NCBI RefSeq assembly: GCF_052425735.1
Contig: NC_135761.1
Coordinates: 620,001-684,000 of the forward strand
Direction: 5' to 3'
DNA length: 64,000 nucleotides
Source: Oculina patagonica
Taxonomy: Eukaryota
Notes under the pieces: generated by a model
What the model saw: only the letters and a program-made list of their open reading frames with translations
Database searches by the model: none
Told to the model about the DNA's origin: nothing
Position numbers and translations under genes: made by a program
Shown: piece by piece, positions 20,100 through 37,523 of the stretch
How the letters are laid out: every line of letters starts with the position of its first letter
Position numbering within the stretch: position 1 is the stretch's first letter

Positions 20100-23000
20100 A
20101 TGAAGATGCTGTGTTCTATGCTGTTGGTTGTTCTCGCTTCACAAGCGTTCGTCTTTGCTTTCGACGATAATGAGACCATGGCATGGGTGAGTGGTTTTCT
20201 CCTTTTAACGCCAATACTTTTTCAACTTGTATTAATTGTGAAGCGCATTGAGCTTTGTAAATGCACTATATAAGAACCTTCATTCATTTATATTACATAA
20301 GCCTAGCTTTAAAGGGACTGTGTTACCATGATTTAGTGTCACTTGAAAATCCAATGAAGGTGTTAGTATTAATTAATGGGAAATCCACTAAAAGTGACCT
20401 GGCTTTTCTAAAATGTACTGTACTAGTCATGAAAATTGTTAAGAAGTGGTGTGGCTACGGATGGGTAGGAAGAAAGGGACCTAAAACTTGAAAAGTTCGT
20501 GGCCGATGTTTTTAAGTTTGACAGTGTCTCTTGGAAAGAAATAACATAAAAACCATCGGTTACAGTTTATTCACATCTTGGGGAATGAATTCATGCCTTT
20601 CTTTTATTTTTTTAAGGTTATTTTGTGAGTGCACCCCCACAGTTCTAGCATAGTTTACATAAAAAGCTTAGACGACTTCTCGTGATACAGTCCCTTTCAC
20701 TCGAATACCTTAGGATCTACAAATTTCCAAAAACAGCTTGCATAGCCTGCGAATACAGCCGCCTCTCACGCTTCGATCCGCTGCGTTCGGAGAGGAGCGT
20801 GAGAGACGGCTGTATTCGCAGGCTACAGCTTGTCCGACATAACCTTGAAAGGAACATGGATCGAATCTAACTGTAGAACCATTTTCCTTTGGTAGAAATT
20901 TCTGACCAAATACCGCTACATATCTCCTACACGTTCGGGAAATCAAAACATGGAAACAGCCATCAAAAAATTCCAAGAATTCACTGGTCTGCCTTTGACC
21001 GGCAAATTAGACCAGGCCACCATCGCACAAATGAAGGCACCGCGATGTGGAAATCCAGATAATGTATCAAGCCGTGTCAAGAGGTTTAACACTGCTACCC
21101 CATGGAATAATAATCGCTTGACATACTTTGTGCAATATGGGGCAGATTTGCCACGATCCACTCAAGATAGAGTGTTCGCCAGGGCTCTGCAGTACTGGTC
21201 CGATGTATCGGGACTGTCTTTCTCTAGAGCTGCCAGCATAAGAACTGCTGATCTTAAGATCCGGTGAGTAACGACACATTTTTTCAGGGTGGTTTGAGTT
21301 ACTTTCTATGTGCATTGCAGCAGTTAAGGGGGGCCGTGTCACCGTGATTTAGTGCTACTTAAAAATCCAGTGAAGGTGTTGGTATTAATTGGAACTCGAC
21401 TAATTGTGGCCTGGCCTTACTAAAACGTACTGTACTAGTCAAAAAAATTGTTAAAAAGTGATGTGGCTATGGATGGATAGGAAGAAAGTGGCCTACAGTT
21501 TGAAGAAGTCGGGACGAAGTTTTCAAGTTTGACAGTGATTTTTGGAAGAAAATCACATAAAAACTATTGAATACGGTTTATTTACATCTTGGAGAATGGA
21601 TTTATGCCTTTCTTATGTTTTTAGAAGGTTAATTTTGTTGATCAGTCATCATACCCTGACAGTTCTAGCATAGTTTACACACAAAAAAACTTAGCTAAAC
21701 TTAGTCTTCTCGTGACGCTGTCCCTTTATCGTTCAAGAACGACAGGACACTTATCAAACAACTTTGTTATTATAAAAAAGGTACTGAGTTAGAGGTGTTG
21801 CTTTTTACGTCCAAGTAGGACTCCTGCAATGCTAGGCTTCGCACCTCACTATAAGAGATCAGTTTATAGGGCCTTACTCTCGAGAGAAAAACTTGCGATC
21901 AGCTTTGTAAGTGATCATACGAATGTGGATCATTTTCAGTTTGTGCAGCAATGCTTCGATTAAAATTCGTTGCCAATTTGCATTAAGTATGGTCCTGCAG
22001 TAGATTTCTTTAAGAAGAGCCTAAAGAAGTATCTTTTTTAAAAATCTTTTTCTTTTTCAAAAATCTGGAATGGTGTCAGTGATGACATTAAGCTTCTGTC
22101 ACTTAAACAATTTAAGAAAAAGTACAAATCAAGCATTATTGCAAGTTATTAACGGAACATTTTATTAACTCTAGTTTTCAATTCCTCTCTTCTGTTAGTT
22201 AATCTGTCCATATACTTTATTTCCCATCTTTTTTTTCCACTAAATTTTTTAAGCCTACTTAGATTATTTTTGTGTGTTTGTGTGTGTGTAGTTGTTATCT
22301 TAATCTTTAGTACACCTGACCCTTTTATAAATTGTTGTAATAAACACTGAGTATCGCTGCCCAATCTTGTTAGCCAATGGTGGTTATTTTGGGCAGCCAT
22401 GCACTTTACTTTATTTTATTTTTATTCTTATATGTATTGCAAATTTAATTGAATTAATGGGTGCGAATAAGTTGTTGTTGTTGTTTAAGGAAGCTTTCTA
22501 TTGACCATTTATTTTAGTAAGTGTAGAAAGTATTATTTAAAATGATAATAATTAGTTTTTAAAAAATAGTTTGATAGGTTTTAGAGGGGCCTAGAAGGGT
22601 AAAATCAAAACTGGAGTTTGGGCAAATTTTCGTTGGGAAAATGGGATTTTGGACACTGAGACCGGAAATCACAACCAAAACAATGGGACTGGGATTTGGG
22701 CAAAATTTGACCAAGATGCAGAAAAAAATAGTTACTTTAAAATTCAGAACATTTTAATGCTCTTTAACTCTTGTCTTTCTTTGCGCAGCTTTGGAAGGAG
22801 AAGGCACAGGTGCGAGGGGCGTTTCGACGGACCGAGCGGGGAACTAGCACACGCCTTCTTCCCCGAAGATGGCCGCATACACTTTGATGAAGCTGAAACA
22901 TTCACCGACGGAACACCCCGGGGCATAAACCTTCTGTGGGTTGCTACTCACGAATTCGGTCATGCTTTGGGAATCGACCATTCTGATGTCAGAAATGCTG

Positions 23001-26000
23001 TCATGTACCCATACTACGAAGGATATAGGGCAGACTTCGATCTCCATCAGGACGATATTGATGCGATTCAGTCTTTGTACGGTAAGTCATAATAATAAAC
23101 ATAACAGCCTCGTCCGCAGGCAGGCCTCGTCCTGTGATTGTGCACGGTTCGCTTGGCGTTGTGGGACTGACGTGCACGGTTGGCTGATGGCGTTCTGGGC
23201 CTGATGCGGAGGCGCCTTTTCTCCCTAACTCCTCAACCCCCGCGCTCCCTGTTTCTCCCATCCCCAATCCTCTCCCAACGTCCGAAGCCAAGATCGGCGC
23301 CCGTCAAGGGGACGAATGTGCCCAGATAACACGTGCTTTGAAGGCATAACAAGTCAACAGTGACAACAATGGAGTGACAGGCCTGCACAACTCCCATCCA
23401 CGTGTAATAGCCAGTTAAAGCTTTGCTCTTACGAGTATATCCTTTTAGGGATCTGCCCCTTTTGTACGAGACAATAGGGGGATCTTTGAATATTCATCTA
23501 AGCAATGGTTGTTGTTGAATTAAATGCCAATGCTGCATAAGTATTTGCTTCAAGTTAGGCACTGATGGGTGATGTTGTGTAGGAAGATTCGCGTGTCTGG
23601 GTTACGTTTCTGTTGTAGGGCAGGTTTTCTCTCCTCAAATATAAATTCTTCGAGGGTTGTAGTAGCCACGTGTAATAGCTGGCCATTGCACGTGGATGGG
23701 AGTTGTGCAGGCCTGTCACTCCATTGTTATTGCGGCCAACCCAAAGTCCCGAAATTATTGTCAGTGTAATACTATCAGTAAAACCTTTATTTGGCGGCGG
23801 GCACCTCTGTTACCACCTTTCGGCCATCTCAATGAGGATTTTGTCTATTCGTAGTCATTGGCCTAATCTCGTACCCAGATGTCTACTTACCACGGTAGCA
23901 CTACGAGGGTTGAGAAGATCTGGGTACGAGATTAAGTTTGGCCTTGTTTTTCATTTTCCAATGACAGATGAGAGTCCGAAATAGCAAGTGGGACGAGGTT
24001 GGACTATTGAAAACATTCAAACACACGCCTAATTGTCTTGACATGATTCCTTAAAGCTAAGTGATGATGTTTTAATTTCCTGGCAATAAAGTGATGTTTG
24101 TACCACATCTTGTGCTTATTTCTGATGAACCGGCCCTATTAAGCGGTCACTTACCATTTCCCCAATTCGATTGTATTTGATCATTAGTAAAGTCGATCAT
24201 TCAATGGCAACAAGGTTAAATAAAATTGCCTTGTGAAAAAAATTAATTAAAAGCCCTTCTATCCTTTTGGCATGATATTGAAACTCTCGATAAAAGCGTA
24301 GGCTCGATTTCCACCGCTCTCACAGGACGAAAACGCACGTTTCCGTATTTCTGAAACATGACGGAAACATAGAACTCTATGTTTCCGTCACGTTTACGTG
24401 CTGCGGAAACGTGAAAATCCAAGTCTCTCTGATAATATCACGTTTCCGTCATGTTTCCGCAACGGAAATGCGAGTTTACGTTTCCGTCACATTTCCATTA
24501 GCGGATAGCCGCTGTTGTTTGTTTCCGTCACATTTACGCTAGCGGATTTCTGCTGTTGTTTGTTTCCGTCAAATTTACGTTAGCGGATTTCTGCCGTTTG
24601 TTTCCGTCACATTTACGTTAGCGGATTTCTGCTGTTGTCTGTTTCCGTCAAATTTACGTTAGCGGATTTCTGCTGTTTGTTTTTGTTATTTTTCTGAAGA
24701 CGGATCTCCAATTTGTTTCTATCAACCTTAACTTTTTGAGTAAATTAAAGCATATTTGTGACACAAGTTTAGTAAGAGAAATGAAATCTCAATCATGACA
24801 TGTTATCATCGCGTAAAAGGAACGTAACAGGGCTTTCTCAGTGCGTTTTGTTGTGATGATTGATAAGCATATCCCATTAATAGCTATTTATCACAATACA
24901 GTGCAGCCTGCTAGAACATCACTGCAAACATGCAAATTGTAATCAAGTTTTTTTTATTAATCCATCATTTGAGCTGGTTGGGTCATTTGATGCAGTTATT
25001 ATTTGAGTCAATTGGGTTATTTGCACTGGTTTGATCACTTTAGCCAATTGTGTCATTTGAGCCGGTTGGGTCATTTGAGACAGTTTGGTCATTTGAGTCA
25101 GATGGGTTGTTTGCACTGGTTGGAGTGGTTGACCCAGTTGAGTCACTTGAACCAATTGTGTCATTTAAGCCGGTTGGGTCATTTGTGACGTTTTGGTCAT
25201 TTGGGTTCGATGGGTTGTTTGTACCGGTTTGATCACTTGAAGCAGTTGTGTTATTTGGGCCGGTTGGGTCATTTAAAACAGTTTGGTCATTTGTGACGGT
25301 TTGGTCATTTGAGTCTGATAGGTTGTTTGTACCGGTTTGATCACTTGAAGCAGTTGTGTCATTTGAGCCAATTGTGTCATTTGAGCCGGTTGGTTGATTT
25401 GAGCTGGTTGGGTCATTTAAAACGGTTTGATCACTTGAGCCCAATGGGTCAATTGATGCAGTTGGATCACTTGACCCAACAGTATCATTTGAGTCGGTTG
25501 GGCTATTTGAGACAGTTTGGTCATTTGAGTCAGATGGGTTGTTTGCACCGGTTTGATCAATTGAGCCAGTAGGGTCAAGTGACACAGTTGGGTGACTCGA
25601 GCCAATTGTGTCATTGAGCCGGTTGGGCCATTTGAGACAGTTTGGTCATTTGAGTCAGATGGGTTGTTTGCACCGGTTTGATCAATTGAGCCAGTAGGGT
25701 CAAGTGACGCAGTTGGGTCACTCGAGCCAATTGTGTCATTGAGCCGGTTGGGCCATTTGAGATGGTTTCTTCATTTGAGTCAGATGGGTTGTTTGCACTG
25801 GTTTGATCAATTGAGCCAGTAGGGCCAAGTGATGCAGTTGGGTTACTCGAGCCAATTGTGTCATTGAGTGGATTAGGCCATTTGAGACAGTTTGGTCATT
25901 TGAGTCAGATGGGTTGTTCGCACCGGTTTGAACCTGAGCCAGTTGGGTCAAGTCATGTAGTTGGGTCATTTGAGCCAGTTGTCCTATTTGAGCTGGTTGG

Positions 26001-29000
26001 GTCATTTGAGTTGGTTGAGTCATTTGAGATGGTTTGTCATTTGAGTCAGATGGGTTGTTCGCACCGGTTTGAACCCGAGCCAGTTGGGTCAAGTCATGTA
26101 GTTGGGTCACATGAGCCAATTGTGTCATTGGAGCCAGTTGGGTCATTTGAGTTGGTTGAGTCATTTGAGATGGTTTGGTCATTTGAGTCCGATGGGTTGT
26201 TTGCACCAGTTTGATCACTTTAGCAAGATGGGTCAATTGATGCAATTGGATCACTTGTCCCAATAGTATCATTTGAGTCGGTTGGGCTATTTGAGACAGT
26301 TTGGTCATTTGAGTCAGATGGGTTGTTTGTACCGGTTTGATCAATTGAGCCAGTAGGGTCAAGTGACACAGTTGGGTCACTCGAGCCAATTGTGTCATTG
26401 AGCCGGTTGGGCCATTTGAGATGGTTTCTTCATTTGAGTCAGATGGGTTGTTTGCACCGGTTTGATCACTTGAGCCCGATGGGTCAATTGATGCAGTTGG
26501 ATCACTTGACCCAAAAGTATCTTTTAAGTCGGTTGGGCCATTTGAGACAGTTTGGTCATTTCAGTCCGACGGGTTGTTTGCACCGGTTTGATCAATTGAG
26601 CCAGTAGGGCCAAGTGACGCAGTTGGGTTTCTTGAGCCAATTGTGTCATTGAGCCGGTTGGGCCATTTGAGATGGTTTCTTCATTTGAGTCAGATGGGTT
26701 GTTTGCACCGGGTTGATCACTTGAGCCCAATGGGTCAATTGATGCAGTTGGATCACTTGAGCCAATTGTGTCATTGAGCTGGTTGGGCCATTTAATACAG
26801 GGGGTTTGGTCATTTGAGTCAGATGCATTGTTTGCACCGGTTTGATCAATTGAGCCAGTAGGGTCAAGTGACGCAGTTGGGCCACACGAGCCAATTGTGT
26901 CATTGAGCTGGTTAGGCCATTTGAGACAGTTTGGTCATTTGAGTCAGATGGGTTGTTCGCACCGGTTTGAACCCGAGCCAGTTCGGTCAAGTCATGTAGT
27001 TGGGTCACATGAGCCAATTGTGTCATTTGAGCTGGTCGGGTCATTTGACGCGGTTCAGTTATTTGACTCAGATAAGTTGTTTGCACCAGTTTGATCAAAT
27101 GAGCAGTTGGATCATTTGAGTAGTTTGAGTCATTTGAGCCAGTTAGGACATTAGTTGGAACAGGGTCATTTGACCTGGTTGGGTCATTTGATGCATGTCA
27201 GTCATTTGAGCCAGTTACCGCAAATAATTGAGTTGGTTGGAGCATTAGCCTGCGAATACAGCCGCCTCTCATTCACGTGCCGCAACAAACGAAACGGAAA
27301 GAGCTCTTCGTTGCGGGACGTGAATGAGAGGCGGCTGTATTTGCAGGCTATTGGAGCATTTGAACTATTTTGGTCGATTGAGGTGGTTTGGTCATTTGAG
27401 CAGGTTAACTTGAGGGGGCTGTTTCAATTGAGTCTGTTGGGTGTTTGTTTTAAGCAGTTTGGTTTGTTCAAAGAGGTTAGGTTGTTTAGTTGGTTGTTTA
27501 AGCCAATTTGTCTTGGTCATTTGAGCTAGATGGATTTTTAAAGCAGTTGAGTCATCTAAGGTAACTGTCTTATTTGTAGAAAAGGAGTATCTATGTAACA
27601 TTCAGGATAGTGTCATTTGGGGAGTACAGTGTAACCTCGGTTTAAGTAAGGGCAAAGTAAGGTTTCGTTAAATCAGGGTTCTTCTCAATATATTTCACTA
27701 TTATTGGGACAAAACCATAGTTCTTTAAATCGATGACTTTATATACGGGTTCTTTAAATCGAGGTTCTACTGTAGCATCTTCTTATAAATACTAATGACA
27801 GATGTCTCAAATAGAGTTGCACTTCATACCAATGTAATTTCAATCCAAATAAATGTACATGAGTCCTGTAACATTATAAGACCAAAGTCTACATAAATGC
27901 TTATGTACATTGCAGCCTCAAAGTGTGACCACATTCACATAGTTCAGGATACACAGCATATTTTTCCAGTTTAAAAGCAAAGATAAAATGTGAATTAACC
28001 GATTGCGGACACTTTTTGTGGCTCCTTGCTTTAACTAATGTAGCTATTAAGTGGCACGTTCCTGTAAGCAAATATAAAATGTCAACTTTCTCTGTCAGGA
28101 TGTACTGTATTCTTTCACTAGATGTATCTCCTTACAGTCACTATACAGCTGTAAATAGTAATTAAAGCAAGGTTCTCCTGATCTTGGTTATCAAAGCCGC
28201 TGTAGTTCCTCTGTTCTCCAAAACTACCCGGAAAGATCTTGTAGCAATGAGAGCAACCTCTCTTTGCACTATGGCCAAGGAATCCGCAAAGTTTCCGTGC
28301 TGCTGGAATATCAGATGCAAAACACAACACAGCTGCATGAATTTCCACTGCAGTAGATGGGCTTCGATAAGTGTTCACCTTGACTCCTTTCCAGAGAGCA
28401 TTCAATTCATCGACAGCTGGCTCAAGAAAATGATTTAGGGATTTATGTCACTTACATAGTTCTTGTATTGTCAGACTAGGACAAAATAAACAAGCCATAT
28501 CAAAATGATCCATGTGTGCTGCTGACGTGTTCGTGGTGGTAAAGGTTGCAGCAGTTTTACATCTTCAGAGTGAAGCAATTCCTCAACATCACTTAAGTCC
28601 GAGTCGACATAATCTGTACCACCATCTTCATGGTGGCTACTATCCTCATCAGAAAGGCTGTCAGACTCTTCTTGCTCCTGAAAGAAAAGAAGTGTACTTG
28701 TTATTATTTTACTGAAGATACATTTAGAGGAAACTCATTCAGAGGATTCTCAAGCAACCTCCTGCAGCAGTATAAGAAATAGTGAATAAAAGAAATAGTG
28801 CAGTGTGCTGCATTTTAAAGGGCCTTAGTTTAAATTTATTACAGAACCTTTTAGTAAAGCACTAAATCCTTACAAACTGGATGGTATAGTTAGCCATTAA
28901 TTCTGAACTTGTCTAAAAAAGATCCTAGTCACACCCAGTTTTTTTTAAAACAAAAATTTAGAATCTGAGAGACTGGGAGACGTCTCATGTTAAAAACAAT

Positions 29001-32000
29001 TTGGGGCAACAGTACACGATGGGTAACTGTTATAATCATACAATGTAACTTTATGACCCATGAGGATTTTTAGATTTCCCCCACCCTAGTAAATTAGATT
29101 GGGGTATTATTACAACTTAAAAATATAAAAGGGGTACGTAAGAGACTCATATCTTACAATTTAAATTGTTCAAGCTGAACAGGAATTACCGTGCTACTTG
29201 TAAAACTGTGAACACTTACATGTAAGAGCCAATGCTACCAACAGTCAGACATAAGACAGCAAGAGTCACTCATATTCTTACCACAGATGGGCCTTAAATA
29301 TGAAACAAACCACTGTATACTATGTTTGGCTGAATATCAATTTGTTTTGAATCAAGAAAATTGATTACTGCAAAAATTGAAATTTCCTCCGAGTTTGCTA
29401 TAAGTAGCACAGGGACATTATGAAACAATCAAAAAAAATTTCTGCCAAGACCTATGCCCAGCACTACATGTATGTAAACACATGTTCTTTGTGACCGTTA
29501 TTTTCTCTACAGCTAAGGACTCCCTGTGTACCAGAATGCATTGTGTGCTTTGACTTGAGTTTGGTATGATATGAAACCTTTGTTTTGAAGTGTTTTGCCG
29601 TAGCCTGTTCCAATCTCCGTTAATCTGAGTAATCAAGCCAAATGACCTCAGAAGCAACATTTTTTACCTGTTTCTACTGTTAAATACTATTTAAGACGGC
29701 CAAATGCCCCAAATCTTTTTTATTTTCAAGGGCTTTTCTTCAGCGACAGAATCAAACAAAAACAAACGCTCCAATGCATAACCGTTTACAATGTACCTAT
29801 ATAACAAAGTCTTTAGTATAATGAACGATATTCTTCAGCCCGGCCAAAGTTACAGTAAAGTTTATGGAACAGTACTTCAAGATAACAAACCTCGATATAA
29901 CGAATCAAATCCATCCTAAAAAACCAAACCAATCTAAATATTTTGAAAATTCAAAAATCCTTATCAAAAATGCCCTCTTTATAATAATTTCCTCCAAAAA
30001 TAAACCCACCAAAAAGTCACTTGAACAAGTTAATTTACACACTTGGCCACAACTTGTTTAAAATCACAAATAATTTCCAGGGATGTCGCTAAGGGCCGGC
30101 TGGCAGCTAATTTCACCGGCTGAAAGAGAACTTAAATCCGGCTGAAATTTCAATGAAAACACAGACTAAGGTAAACTTTTAGATCTGCCAAGGCCAGAAA
30201 AGCCAGCTGGGTTTGTTGAAGAGCTGGCTTAGTGTTTTCTTAGCTACAACTCTGAATTTCTAATTTCACATGACAGTTGAAAAAGACATCTCCGATTCCT
30301 TAAAGATCCTAATTTAATGATAACTATATTTTATTCGGGGGACAAAGGTCATCCGTTCAGAACTGCACATCCGTGCGAGCGGCTTGAGTAAGCCGTTTAG
30401 GAAAAGTAAATGCGATCTGTTGGTCTCGTTGACGCGTGCCAAAAGATCAAAAATTTATCTCACAAAAAAAGTTTATAAATGTTCACGGCGCATCATATAA
30501 TCTTTCATAACACATAACTTCTGGGTATAATGCGTTCGAATATATTGTAAGCCATTTCGCCATTCATCGCTATGCATTCGGAATAAATTGTAAGCCGTTC
30601 CGCTGTTCATCGCTCTGCGTTCACAAATTTTCGTAAGCGGTTCAGTTGTTCATGACCATGCATTCAGAATAAATTATAAGCTGTTCAGCCGGGCAGTTTC
30701 ACACGTTCCACACGGCTTTATGAGCCATGCGTTACCCGTTCCATAGCCGAACATTTTACCCGTTCAACAGAAAGCCGATAGTGTACGTTTTCACGTGAGA
30801 CGTCACAAATAATTTTTTAATTTTTTTTAATTTTTTTTTTTTAGTTTTTAATTTTTTTAAATTTTTTTTTTCTTTTTTTTCAATTATTGTATTTGTTTAC
30901 TTATACGTTATTTGTGTGTATTTTTTCTATTGAAATGAATAAAAAAAAAAAAAAACACAGAGGGGGCTTACCTGAATCACTCCCAGAAAGATCCTGTGCA
31001 TGTAAACATGTAGCTGGCACCAATGATAGGTCCAAGTTCCCATCTACATTAAAATACACATTGGTGATTATCATAGGATTTACTGTACATATAATGTAGA
31101 TTATACCCAGCATATCACATCGAACAAAACCAAACAAATTTTTCATCAAACTCAATCGAACAAATTTGGAAGGCATCGAACGATTAAATTCAATGTTGTT
31201 CGGTCATCGAACGAAATCGGACAACTATTCTTTTATGAGTTTGATTTCCAAACCAAATCGAATGAAATCGAAATTAAGCGTTCAATTTAATTCGATTAAT
31301 GTAAATTGAACTTGTAGCTTAAATTTAAAATAAAGAAATTGGAACCTAATGAGCGAGTAAAAAGTTATTGATTATTCCTTACATGGTTTTGGAATAAGTG
31401 ATGGGACACGGTATCGTATAATCACAGCTCTAAAAATTAGTATGGAAATAAAGGAAACATAAATTTAGATGGCTGGATCGACTGATGCATTTATAATCCC
31501 CATTGATAATCAAATGACGGAAAACTGAACATTCGATTTTGCTTGATTCAGATTATATTGTGATACGTCATAAGCCACTCGCTTAGGTATCGTTCGACGA
31601 CAGAACTAAGTTGAACCTCATCGAACTTTATCGAACGTTCGATTTGGTTTGATTTGCATTTATTTTTTGTAAGTTCGATTTCGTTCGATGACCGAACAAC
31701 ATCAAATTTAATCGTTCGATTTACGTTCGATTGAGTTTGAAAACCAAACATTTGATGTGATACGCCAGGATTATAAAGCCTGTCTTCACATAATTAACTG
31801 TGGGTTGAAAAATTAATGTTACCAAATTAAATGTTTTTCCTGGTCAGAAATAATTTGTCTCTTGACCAGTCATTTGTTTGAGCCCTGGATAATCAAGAAC
31901 CTTGAGCACTGGTTGTAAATAAACAGCAAACGTGTGAAGTCCAAAGGGATGGGCAGTTAAATACTGTTGTTTCAAACTTTCTTGTCAACCTAAAAATATG

Positions 32001-35000
32001 GTTGTTCAAGCCTTCACTTTTCAGACCTTAATTACAAATTCAAATGAGTTTGATCACTGCACAAGGTTAAATTATAAAAAAAAGATAACGCGTAAAGTTT
32101 ACCTTCGCTTTCACTTGAGCTCGATCCAGGAACGTCTTTAGGTACAGAATGAGATGTAGAGGAGTTGATATATCTTTTTTTCCACAGTTTTCACTGATTT
32201 ACACTTGCATCGAATTACAGTCTTCGGTGTTCGTGGTATTGTGAGTTGCTAAGAAGCTGATGGCAATGACCACATCGTTGTCTGCATCTTGTTCGCCTCT
32301 TTTGACGACTCGACTCGCCATGCATTTCTTTCCTCCTCATCCTATGCTCGTTTAATGCGTTGATTTAAAATTATACTTAAATAAAAGATCAAAATCTCCT
32401 CGAAAAAGCACGATTGATCACTAAAATCACACGAAAATTTATCCACATCAAAAGGATCGAAAGGTGACAAGTGCGCAGATGCAGTTGCGCATGGTGATGC
32501 GGGCTCAAGTTCGGTCAGCAAAGACTCGCGTCGCGTCACTTGCGAGGCGGGAAATTTGTAATTAGCAAAGCGAAGATTCAACAACGAAAGCGAGTGTCAG
32601 CACCTTTACATCTGTTCTATTTCGACTGTTTGGCAAGTGCTATGGAATCGCCGAGAGAAGAGAGATAGAAGACCTGATCGAGAAACCCCAAGAGCTGCTC
32701 CAGAGAATCAGGCTACTCCAGAAGATATCGATCTTGTGAGAAAGTTACTGACCGAAGTTGCGGAAATTCGCAAAGAAAATCAACAACTGAAAAGTGAAGT
32801 GTCAAATCTTAAGACAAAAACAAGAAGGCGACTATTCCAGAGATCAAAAGACAGCGATAGTGAGTGCTCGGTGAGTAAGATTATTTTACTATTATACTTC
32901 TAAACTGAATACTAACCGAATATCGAGACGCTCGAATGGCGGTTTTAATAATGAGTCTTTGGGTGATGTGTGACATTCCCCATGTATTAATGAACGTTGT
33001 CAATGAAGGTTTAGCTTTAACTTTTGCGCTCCGAATATCATTCACTGCAAACTAAACATGTAACTAAGTCATCTACGCAAAAGTGCGTGCATATATTTGC
33101 TTAACAGTATCATAATGATTAAATCCAAGAGTACTTATGAGTCTATCATTCATTCACATACACTTGAATTCATTTGGAGTCTTTGTGCAAATTCATGGTT
33201 TTGTTTAGCAAAGGAAAGGTTTGAGAGAAGAAACTAGAACGGTTTTCAAAAAGCACATGCTTTTTTCCGTTAACTGGCGTTACATTTTCCACTGAAGAAG
33301 GGGCAGTAGCCCCGAAACGTCTGGGAAAAACTTTCAATCATCGGCGCATTTAACATTTACATTTTAACATTTCTATGAACTAACTATATGCGCTACACAG
33401 CCACACGAAAATTTAATATATATGCTAACAGCCGAGAGAAACGCGCGCAGGCTGATTTAAACACGACTTCTATGCAACTTATTCCCACTAACCAGGTTAT
33501 AAAATCGATTTGTTTCGTTAATTCAAACTTAACAAAAATTGGATTATACATGTATGTTACTCTGTAATATATGTTTATTCGCAAGCAGTGAACAATACAG
33601 TAATCACCCAAAAATTACGTTCGCTCGGTGCTTCCAGTTTGAGTCGATGTATTCAAACTTAACAAAAATTGGATTATACATGTATGTTACTCTGTAATAT
33701 ATGTTCATTCGCAAGCAGTGAACAATACAGTAATCACCCAAAAATTACGTTCGCTCGGTGCTTCCAGTTTGAGTCGATGTATGTATATTAATTGTGAAGG
33801 TGTGCTTTAAAAAATTTAAAATGTCAATGTGAGTTAGTTTGACACTGTTTTTTTTTCTGTTATTATAAAACTACAAGAATGCTGTCAGGAAAGTGTGGCA
33901 GGAACTGACAAGGCAAGAGGATCAGGAAAACCAGCTTGAATACAATTTGAACACCAGGTGAAATATGTAATAGATTGGTTCTTTTTAGTCTGCATTTACG
34001 TCGTCTGGACGCGGTTTACCGGCGTTTTGAGGAAAATGACATAACTGTGAATAATCGGCTAAGTAATCGACTTTAGACCATGACGTTCACTGTCTGAAGG
34101 GCTATAAAGCGCTGCATAATAACAGTTTTTCTATCTGCAAAATGCGTTTCGTTGACAATTTGTAGCCTGTGTACAGCCGTCCCGCTCCCCTCAAAAAAAT
34201 CGGGGAGGGCACGTCGTTCCCTCTCCGATTTTTTTGAGGGGAGCGGGACGGCTGTACACAGGGTAACAATTTGTTGAATAATAAAACAGATATCCTGCTC
34301 AATTATGCGGAATATCGTCTGGGGGTATCAGGCGCGATTCGCAGAATAATTGTTTAATATCCAACTCGCGCTCATGGAATAATTGTTAAGTACACAACAG
34401 TTATCCTGCGATCTACTTACATGTATTGCGCGTCAGCCAAGTCATGTGGGGGGAAGAGGAGAGCGCTTACCGTAACTTTTAGTTTTTTTTGTTGCGAGTT
34501 GTGATGGGTTCGTTGTATTATTTGTTTGATTGAGATGAGATTAATACGGTGGCCAAGAAGGGACAAGTTCACAACGCTTCTTCTTGAAAATGCAGTGTTG
34601 TTCTGTAGAAATCTAACTGTTATTTTTAGAACTGAATTTGCGAACAACACTGCATTTTCAAGAAGAAGCGTTGTCCCTTCTGGGCCACCGTAGATTTAAC
34701 TGCTTCAATTCAGCAGTTAATTATGCGTAATGGGTTTGTATAGTCTTTTATTCATTACCGATCATTACCTCTATCGTAGGTTTAATAGTCCATCAAACCA
34801 GGCCATGGCAAAGAAAGTTGTCAAAGAAGTGCAGTCAGTGTATGGCAAGAAAAAATGGAAAAAGGCTATCATAAGAGGTAAATTTTCTCGTAAATGTTGT
34901 ATGTACATTACCAATTTTTTTTGTCTTTTTGATTACTCGTTTTAACAATATTATTCTCAGTTAAACAGTTTTAAAGGGCCTCAATAAATTTGGAATGATG

Positions 35001-37523
35001 TAGACTTAAATTTCGTTTTAAGTTTGTTTAATTGTTATCGCTCTAGATCTGTACATGTAGTACATGTATTTTGGGCTTGTAATTGGCGAAACGCCGTAAG
35101 TAGCCTCCCTTATTAATAAATATTCTGTTGCATTTTAGTTGCCGTTCAACAACACTGGAGATCCTTACGTGACGATGCAACCAGAAAAACAAATAGCAAG
35201 TTCGAGGAACACAGACGAAAAGTAAAGCGGAACAATCGTTTAAAGAGAGTAAGTATAAGAAACATACATTGTTGCTCCTTGATGATTAACTGGAGAGTTT
35301 CAGCTTTAGCCTTTACTTCTCTCAAACGATTGGCATTAACTTTTGTAAGACTGGTTTTCACTGGCCATAAACATAAGCGCATAAGAAGAGCAAACACTGT
35401 CCGATTAGACATAAACAAAAACCAAAAGAAAACGAAACTATTCGTTCTTCTTGTGCTTTTCGTATCCCTTCGGGGCTTATTATTCCTGTGCATGTTGAGA
35501 ACAGGATGATAAGAAAGAGTGTGTTCAATCTTCTTATGCGCTCTTGTGCTTGTACTTAACTCGGTGAGAATCAGCCTTTTAATAAAGTTCTAAACGACAA
35601 TATTTTTAGTCAAACAGAAAGTTAAAGTTCTTTTTTTGATGCGTTTTCCCTTTCTATCTTTTAGAAACTATTCAGGCGCCTCCAAATTCTACAGAAACGC
35701 ACTCTGTCAGAAAATGACAAAGACAAGGCGAAAGAAATCCTATCTTCCCCGAATGCGATTGACTTTATGTCATCAGAGGAAAGTGAAATCGATGATCCAG
35801 ATTCGACGAGTGGTCCAAAGCAAAGAAAAACAAGAAAACTGACGTGGGAACGCACCAAGCTCAGGAACATTAAATCAAAACTAGACGAGGCTCATTTAAA
35901 TGGCCTGAGCGAGAAACAACGTCGCACAAGTGCCCGTGTAAACAGAACCGAGACGGCATCTGTACGGCCCTGCCCGACCAATGCCCCTAGTTGGGCAGTA
36001 CGCAATGATTGATAGCCACTGGACTGAGTGTATTGACTGTGTCATAACCACTCATACAAATTTTTTAGCTTCAACGAACAGTGTGGAACCTTGAAACGTT
36101 CATAATCAATATACATTTTAATAAAACATATATCATTTTTCTTTATTCTTGGGGACAATCAGGTTGTTTCCATTTCCAGATTTGCCAGCAAGTTATGTTA
36201 TGATGCGTAAGACTTTTTCAAAAACAAGATCAGTAAAATAACGAACGCTACTTTTTCAACAACAAAAATGATTATAGGAAAGGAAAATAAATAAAGTTTC
36301 GGTAGAAACTATCGGCGTCCGCAACTGCTATCACACAATTACGCGTCCAGTATTGGGCCTGATTACGTCAACGGAAACAAGAAAAAATAACATGTTTCCG
36401 GAACGTTACCTGGTATTTCCGTCACTTTTAGGCCTGTTTACGTCGACGGAAACCAGCAAAAATCATATTTCCGGAACGTTATCCCGTGTTTCCGCAAACT
36501 TTAGGTCTGTATACGTCGACGGAAACATGAGAAAAACATATTTCCGGAACGTTATCGCGTGTATCCGCAAACTTTAGGTCTGTATACGTCGACGGAAACA
36601 TGAAAAAAACATATTTCCGGAACGTTATCGCGTGTATCCGCAAACTTTAGGTCTGTATACGTCGACGGAAACATGAAAAAAACATATCTCCGGAACGTTA
36701 TCGCGTGTATCCGCAAAGGTAACCATGAGGTTCCGCTTGCGGAAACCGTTGTTTCCTTCAGCTGAAACATGACGGAAACATGTATAAAATTGGTCCGGTT
36801 CCGCTGTGTCCGCAGCAACGGAAACACGAGTAAACGCCACAAAACCGCAGACGGAAACACGAGTTGTCCGTCATGTTTCCGCAACGGTGACACATGTTTC
36901 CGCAACGTTTCCGTTTACGGATTCTTGGTATTTCGTCCTGTGCTCGAGTCCGTTCTTTGTTCCTCCCCGAGAAAAGAGTCAAAAGTCCCTGAACTGAACG
37001 ATGTCAATAATGAGACACACAACAACCTGTGGAGTCGCCAAATAATAAAAACAACTTTAAGCATGGGTATTTTGCAGCAAAGTGCGAAGCACAAGACAGA
37101 GCGTTCTACATTACTGTGAGATTAGGCGTTCTTTTCTTCGCGACGGGAAGAAAGAGAGAAAAAAAAACGAGAAAAAAAAAAGAACGCCGTATCGCAGGTT
37201 GTATTGAGAAGGGAGGTACAGAATCTGGAGGAGGAAGAAATTTTGGCTAAAAAGATAGGGAGGAGGGAGAAATTTTAGCTCCAAAAATAGGGAGGAGGAA
37301 GAAATGATGCAAAAAGTAGGGATGAGTTACCCTGCTGTCCCTCCCCCCGCTGAATTTTACAGGACAGTTAAACTGTCTGTCTCGGCTCGTGATTCACGTG
37401 TCCTTTCGACACCCGCTTCAACGTCTGTTTTGCAGGATAAAATTAATAATTAAATTTTCCCAGCCTTGAACATTTTATGACTTTCTTTTTATTGCTTTTT
37501 ATTTTTTTGCAGGCTCATCTTAA
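20100..37523 (+). CDS. MMP-A, minimal matrix metalloproteinase (M10A); coding exons 20100-20186, 20896-21263, 22789-23081, 37513-37523; 3' UTR exon from 38116
   Basis: Signal peptide, PRCGNPD cysteine switch, RVKR furin site, [12 protein letters not shown] zinc site, AVMYP Met-turn. The last coding exon (G-S-S-stop) is assigned by paralogy with MMP-B and lies beyond the 12.6-kb transposon. Confidence 0.88.
20313..20695. mobile_element. AGGGACTGTG-TIR MITE (TTAA target) in MMP-A intron 1; related copies at 21328-21725, 40221-40574, 42277-42655
   Basis: TTAA-AGGGACTGTG...CAGTCCCT termini. The 42277 copy has TTAA on both sides. MMP-B has an empty single TTAA (41413-41416) where MMP-A has the 21328 copy. 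Confidence 0.8.
20743..20825. mobile_element. Short palindromic TAGCCTG...CAGGCTA element; related copies at 27246-27350, 34163-34265, 49896-50056
   Basis: Hairpin structure with target duplications: TTGGAGCAT (27246 copy), ACAATTTG (34163 copy), ATCGTTTT (49896 copy), partial CAGCTTG (this copy, absent in MMP-B). Confidence 0.8.
24338..24705. repeat. Left subterminal repeat array of the transposon
   Basis: About 40-bp tandem units GTTTCCGTCA(C/A)ATTTACGTTAGCGGATTTCTGC plus dispersed TTTCCG motifs. Confidence 0.9.
24962..27240. repeat. Complex 18-bp-period minisatellite with higher-order units, inside the transposon
   Basis: Consensus near TCATTTGAGCCAGTTGGG. The minus strand reads SNDPTG-type hexapeptides in broken frames. 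It fades into degenerate copies to about 27620. Confidence 0.92.
28172..32340 (-). pseudogene. Decayed EnSpm/Tnp2-type transposase (remnant exons about 32340/32325-32103, 31043-30972, 28677-28172)
   Basis: FLEPAVDELNALWKG...SDIPAARKLCGFLGHSAKRGCSHC is the typical CMC transposase core. N-terminal RCGHCHQLLSNSQYHEHRRL*F and WLVYFVLV*QYKNYVSD contain stops. Apparent deletion junction near 28440; C-terminal half missing. Confidence 0.82.
32642..36012 (+). CDS. Transposon second gene (TnpA-like accessory, C14orf93-like C-terminus); exons 32642-32870, 33878-33957, 34780-34877, 35139-35248, 35665-36012; one frameshift just after the ATG
   Basis: Four GT-AG introns join in phase (0,2,1,0) with no stops, about 290 aa: coiled coil, basic helix (HRRKVKRNNRLKRKLFRR), DFMSSEES...RKLTWER...LDE...RPCPTNAPSWAV. 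AATAAA at 36120-36125. Confidence 0.8.
33285..33328 (+). ncRNA. Minimal type I hammerhead ribozyme (Penelope/retrozyme type)
   Basis: TTTTCCA-CTGAAGAA-GGGGC(AGTA)GCCCC-GAAAC-GTC-TGGGAAA: 7-bp stem I (one G.U pair), core CUGAAGA, perfect 5-bp stem II, GAAA, palindromic ACGT instead of stem III, GUC cleavage triplet ending at 33321. Confidence 0.75.
33521..33780 (+). repeat. Near-perfect 130-bp tandem duplication in intron 1 of the transposon second gene
   Basis: 33521-33650 repeated at 33651-33780 with one visible mismatch. Confidence 0.9.
36365..36920. repeat. Right subterminal repeat array of the transposon
   Basis: About five copies of a roughly 70-bp unit (TACGTCGACGGAAACATG...CCGGAACGTTATCGCGTGTATCCGCAAACTTTAGGTCTG) plus dispersed GGAAAC motifs, inverted relative to the left array. 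Confidence 0.9.

Follow-up and report, generated by a model that had tools for sequence, protein, structure and literature searches.

Organization and transcription of the partner gene

The window, by which we mean the whole 64,000-nucleotide stretch of Oculina patagonica DNA that was analysed, carries at positions 32642-36012 one real gene of five exons, which is the second gene of a CMC/EnSpm transposon and is referred to below as the partner gene. Its parts are the following:

32642-32870, plus strand: exon 1 of the partner gene, with the ATG, a private 8-bp deletion and then a coiled-coil helix; junction 32870^33878
33878-33957, plus strand: exon 2, open frame; junction 33957^34780
34780-34877, plus strand: exon 3, with the internal ATG at which the RefSeq models start; junction 34877^35139, found in two runs
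35139-35248, plus strand: exon 4, encoding a basic helix; junction 35248^35665, found in three runs
35665-36012, plus strand: exon 5, encoding the conserved C-terminal domain; stop codon TGA at 36010-36012
36120-36125, plus strand: AATAAA 3' of the partner gene, which may not be the polyA site in use

Upon translation, the joined frame of the five exons is free of stops except just after the ATG, and exons 2-5 are without any lesion. The summed exon length is 862 nt in the window copy, compared to 870 nt (290 codons) in its sister copies. All four GT..AG junctions are found in contigs from three putative RNA runs and are absent from the contigs of a DNA run; the runs were examined as contigs, and their RNA nature is a guess. 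The same junctions are found in the GenBank protein KAL9974121.1 (252 aa), and RefSeq models the locus as LOC144652051, whose variants X1 and X2 (products of 176 and 183 aa) span only exons 3-5 and start at the ATG of exon 3. The gene is hence not hidden, as had been supposed, but already represented in both databases. The exons were searched singly, and database proteins (KAL9974121.1, the paralog P0067 and others) stood in for the full-length product. In another coral, a 1223-nt intronless contig encodes a homolog of 298 aa.

The sequence-only reading had described five exons, a product of about 290 aa and a polyA signal. The exons and their frames stand, as does the length of about 290 aa in the sister copies, but the AATAAA at 36120-36125 is overrun by RNA contigs that go on beyond 36296, and may therefore not be the site that is used. 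One spliced RNA contig (1334 nt, run X18) extends about 500 nt past 36296, so that the transcript may run into the subterminal repeats of the element; this contig bears sister-copy letters and may stem from another copy. The introns of the gene hold MITE-like insertions that are palindromic, as well as a tandem duplication of 130 bp (34157-34271, 34545-34692, 35371-35547 and 33521-33780). The summed depth of the DNA run reaches 57,000-74,000 in the bins covering 34103-34364, where the first palindrome lies, against a few hundred nearby, and the repeat family at this position must therefore be very abundant.

A private lesion in the window copy

In the window copy, the frame opened by the ATG runs for eight codons before it meets a stop. 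In four sister copies, 8 extra bases follow MESPREE and the frame is continuous, so that the lesion of the window copy is a private 8-bp deletion at about 32660-32666. The frameshift after the ATG, which had been read from the letters as the only lesion of the gene, is thereby borne out and given a size, and a misread start in place of a frameshift is ruled out by the same four copies. The DNA contigs are interrupted between 32656 and 32731, across the deletion site.

That the frame at this locus is a dead remnant, and that the two RefSeq products (176 and 183 aa) are longest-ORF artefacts downstream of the frameshift, strikes us as somewhat the better reading of the window copy, given that the deletion is private to it, that the RefSeq models begin at the ATG of exon 3 and that the RNA contigs carry sister-copy letters (e.g., at 35698), which makes transcription and splicing evident for sister copies but not for the window copy itself. 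The intactness of exons 2-5 speaks against it. This reading concerns the window copy only and is compatible with the explanation that we prefer for the gene as a whole.

The surrounding element and its subfamily history

The partner gene lies inside an element of 12,622 bp, at positions 24321-36942, in which we recognise the following further features:

24321-24332, plus strand: left terminal inverted repeat CACAGGACGAAA, with the same ends in sister copies
24326-24649, minus strand: left subterminal array of GACGGAAAC motifs, from the motif count in 64 kb
24900-27250, no strand assigned: internal satellite with an 18-bp period, differing in length among copies
28178-28444, minus strand: transposase remnant corresponding to residues ~324-411 of the 890-aa Tnp2 exon, 79% identical to the intact ORF of copy C2c, with a weak PF02992 match
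28447-28635, minus strand: transposase remnant corresponding to residues ~23-85, abutting the other remnant, with residues 86-323 deleted
36370-36915, plus strand: right subterminal array of 73-bp repeat units carrying GACGGAAAC
36931-36942, minus strand: right terminal inverted repeat (inverted CACAGGACGAAA), with ends compared to those of sister copies

The motif GACGGAAAC has 14 exact matches in the 64 kb, all of them in the two element ends and in opposite orientations; when one mismatch is allowed, the number of matches rises to 31, where chance would give 10.2 on average, and none of 100 shuffles reaches 31. The motif also occurs in copies C2c and C8a. Target duplications of 3 bp are seen in copies C10a (CAC) and C2c (AAA), while the flanks of the window copy, TCT and CTC, differ, making its target duplication imperfect. 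Taken together, a Tnp2 (PF02992) transposase, inverted ends starting with CAC next to a target duplication, and subterminal motif arrays identify the element as one of the CMC/EnSpm type. The internal satellite at 24900-27250 can be read without stops in several frames of both strands (PTGSNDQT-type repeats). Outside the element, on the plus strand at 20950-23092, there are open frames with a matrix-metalloproteinase (MMP) cysteine switch (PRCGNPD) and a zinc site, and the transposon appears to have inserted either into an intron of this host MMP gene or shortly downstream of it.

Compared to the partner gene, the transposase has decayed much further, as had been noticed from the letters, with only residues ~23-85 and ~324-411 of 890 left in the window and one TGA in each remnant. 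The gaps are not introns, as the remnants abut and residues 86-323 and 412-890 are unmatched anywhere in the element. These deletions are common to all five young copies, which points to a non-autonomous subfamily, a deletion derivative in which the partner gene was retained. The lesions of the partner gene, on the other hand, differ from copy to copy, and being private to each copy they indicate that the partner gene of the master element was still intact. The genome also has two older subfamilies (L034/L035 and L036/L037) in which all five partner exons are combined with an intact opposite-strand ORF of 890 aa; these ORFs match PF02992 (Tnp2) with 56.3 and 64.3 bits, at a cut-off of 28.6.

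We consider it likely that the DNA transposon is of the CMC/EnSpm type (CACTA-like) and has two genes, of which the stretch represents the second, with the following layout, history and partner role. The autonomous element would measure about 15 kb, with CACAGGACGAAA inverted ends, 3-bp target duplications and GACGGAAAC arrays in both subterminal regions, and would carry two divergent genes, one for a Tnp2 transposase of about 900-1000 aa and the other for a five-exon partner of about 290 aa. The window copy would come from the young non-autonomous subfamily, whose master would have lost most of the transposase and kept the partner gene intact, and would later have gained the 8-bp frameshifting deletion after the ATG, while sister copies are transcribed and spliced. 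The partner protein itself would work in transposition beside the transposase.

Selection on the gene and linkage to Tnp2 transposases

The partner gene is under purifying selection. All five of its exons are open in copies C2b, C2c and C8a, with conserved splice sites, and the Nei-Gojobori dN/dS between three subfamilies, over about 265 codons, is 0.09-0.17.

The C-terminal domain encoded by exon 5, whose consensus over 81 sequences shows the motif MSSEES ... W-E ... LD ... S-R-P ... P-W-A, has 26 matches in the O. patagonica genome (529 Mb). When the coordinates of a six-frame transposase search were compared to those obtained with the 81-sequence profile of this domain (A4), 8 of 10 full-length Tnp2 loci in the genome proved to be accompanied, at a distance of 1.6-11 kb, by a divergently oriented partner match on the opposite strand, including lineages whose transposases are only 40% identical. 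Two full-length Tnp2 ORFs that are 46% identical to the reference (C1:45131292-45133880 and C5:28717973-28720558) have no partner-family match near them, and different CMC lineages may have different partners. Elsewhere on the contig that holds the window (C4, 33.5-41.3 Mb), many degraded Tnp2 fragments are clustered with several partner-family and several DUF4616-like matches, and this region may be rich in transposons.

Outside of O. patagonica, a profile search over 1.84 billion proteins returned 486 relatives at E ≤ 0.001, with named examples in sea stars, a sea cucumber, an acorn worm, a brachiopod, a nemertean, amphioxus, an anemone and a mussel, and all annotated as "uncharacterized". 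Of nine non-Oculina loci that were fetched, five have a Tnp2 upstream on the opposite strand (Porites lutea, Desmophyllum, where the Tnp2 is a fragment, Apostichopus, Ptychodera and Lineus). In Lineus longissimus, this is a nearly full-length ORF (L052:2491-4909, minus strand) that is not annotated as a Tnp2 and shares part of its extent with an annotated protein kinase gene. The other four loci (Acropora digitifera, Lingula, Patiria and Branchiostoma) have no Tnp2 within 10 kb, which indicates that the family also exists apart from transposases. This head-to-head pairing, at most Tnp2 loci of one genome and in five other species, agrees with the sequence-only proposal of a partner to animal CMC transposases, and supports the family, by its genomic arrangement, as the regular partner of CMC (Tnp2) transposases in animals that include corals and echinoderms as well as a hemichordate and a ribbon worm.

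Predicted fold and possible role of the partner protein

In the AlphaFold model of the intact paralog P0067 (pLDDT 91, pTM 0.73), the N-terminal part forms a long coiled-coil helix, there are helices of strongly basic character, and a compact fold of helices plus a small sheet is predicted with confidence. Foldseek found no match for it in the PDB at E ≤ 0.001, and the best hit of VIA-align against 48,161 chains (Z 6.9, on a helical stretch) is at background level, so the predicted fold would seem to have no solved relative. Pfam searches with each exon, the annotated proteins and 137 relatives brought up neither a DNA-binding domain nor a TnpA family, and the helix of exon 1 gave only weak matches of coiled-coil or leucine-zipper type. 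In view of these results, the protein is tied to the subterminal repeats by analogy only.

By that analogy, the role we regard as the most likely single one, albeit tentatively, is that of a dimer that would recognise the subterminal repeats and aid or regulate the transposition complex, in the way that TnpA does for TnpD; the likeness to TnpA would be one of analogy and not of homology. A dimer binding the ends would fit the coiled coil, the basic helices, the motif arrays and the retention of the gene in copies that lack a transposase. Slightly less probable in our estimate, and on the unlikely side, is a true element gene whose product does not bind the ends but acts as a regulator, for instance as a dosage inhibitor, an adaptor for nuclear import or chromatin, or an anti-silencing factor for the transposase. 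Such a product could do without the DNA-binding domain or fold that the searches looked for, its richness in coiled-coil and charged helices is typical of protein-protein scaffolds, and GACGGAAAC is unchanged across subfamilies that diverge at about 35% of the exon 5 residues of their partner proteins. Against it, the conserved helices are highly basic and a short motif is densely arrayed at each end, as would fit an end-binding partner, and the non-autonomous copies retained the gene.

Relationship to DUF4616

The sequence-only reading had likened the protein to those of the C14orf93 type. Vertebrate C14orf93/RTFC is, as we assume, a member of the Pfam family DUF4616 (PF15394), and it is with DUF4616-like proteins that a kinship became apparent, through profile alignment, fold and intron positions, although the Pfam model itself matches neither the window protein nor any of the 137 relatives, even at E ≤ 1 to 10. 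In a six-frame search of the genome, the DUF4616 model matches only two other loci. One of them (C6:1299549-1301220) seeds a small coral family of nine proteins (A3), seven of which have weak PF15394 matches. Aligned with hhalign, the A4 profile (81 sequences) and A3 match over 85 columns with their motifs in register (Prob 93.8, E 1.8e-7), and 60 column-shuffled controls score at most 18.3, against 44.9 for the real alignment. The signal emerged only with the 81-sequence profile, a shallow, coral-only alignment (A1) giving no significant hhalign result (Prob 1.3, P 0.04). The A4 model also detects the DUF4616-like locus on C6 in the genome with an E-value of 2.4e-4.

The partner gene and the coral DUF4616-like gene agree in the positions and phases of their last two introns, and the C-terminal motif of DUF4616 (an acidic S-[SD]-E-E, W, S-x-R-x-x-P and W-A) is in register with that of the partner. 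At the level of structure, the ESM Atlas clusters matched by the AlphaFold model include one with the name "DUF4616 domain-containing protein", at a TM-score of 0.64 by both lengths (214 residues, rmsd 3.1), and one from a mollusc, at a TM-score of 0.72, and a feature-based search returns the same neighbours as the DUF4616 fold match. The matched clusters of DUF4616 come from fungi (Mucoromycota) or cnidarians, and the comparison was confined to non-vertebrate sequences. A distant relationship between the partner family and DUF4616 is thus supported, if indirectly.

The genomic context is shared as well, as DUF4616-like and partner genes both adjoin Tnp2 transposases in O. patagonica; by its match coordinates, the DUF4616-like gene on C6 has a Tnp2 ORF in divergent orientation at a distance of about 10 kb. 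This bears on a third reading of the partner gene, that it is cargo: an ancestral CMC element would have captured a DUF4616-type host gene and its descendants carried it along, without any part in transposition. CACTA elements do capture host sequence as a matter of general knowledge, and the homologs without a transposase in Lingula, Patiria, Branchiostoma and Acropora adjoin ordinary host genes. We nonetheless regard this reading as improbable, because the same divergent pairing recurs with transposase lineages that are only 40% identical and in four phyla, because the gene is under strong purifying selection within elements, and because the DUF4616-like sister family is likewise paired with a Tnp2 transposase.

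Returning to a partner that takes part in transposition, a more far-reaching scenario, which we find doubtful at present, is that of one ancient family that would be the obligatory partner of one metazoan CMC/EnSpm clade and from which the stand-alone DUF4616 genes, C14orf93/RTFC included, would have been domesticated. The same could perhaps extend to fungi, where DUF4616 and DUF8263 clusters abound. In the literature library searched, nothing was found on DUF4616, on PF15394, or on C14orf93 together with transposons. The relationship places an orphan Pfam family in a transposon context and makes the origin of C14orf93-type genes, as presumed members of DUF4616, a testable question.

Comparison with known two-protein elements

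Transposition by two proteins is textbook knowledge for the CACTA elements of plants. Maize En/Spm, which encodes TnpD and the subterminal-repeat-binding TnpA, shares with the coral element a Tnp2-domain transposase, short inverted ends starting with CAC, a 3-bp target duplication, subterminal motif arrays, a second element protein and the occurrence of deletion derivatives. The two differ in that the coral element has two divergently transcribed genes, whereas En/Spm makes its proteins by alternative splicing of one transcript, and the coral partner has no similarity to plant TnpA, as judged from the exons, the annotated proteins and the 137 relatives, none of which has a TnpA match in Pfam.

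Among animals, a second CACTA protein has so far only been proposed, for one schistosome element and without known relatives. This element, SmTRC1 of Schistosoma mansoni, yields the non-transposase products PrA and PrB by alternative splicing, which were proposed as analogues of TnpA and for which the authors found no relatives in other animal elements (PMC1636069). SmTRC1 resembles the coral element in being an animal Tnp2 element with a second, non-transposase protein proposed in the role of TnpA; in contrast to PrA and PrB, and comparing the systems by description, the coral partner family is conserved from cnidarians to deuterostomes. The partner family described here is conserved, well-folded (by prediction) and expressed, is linked to Tnp2 transposases across four animal phyla, and offers a concrete, testable candidate for the second component of animal CMC elements.
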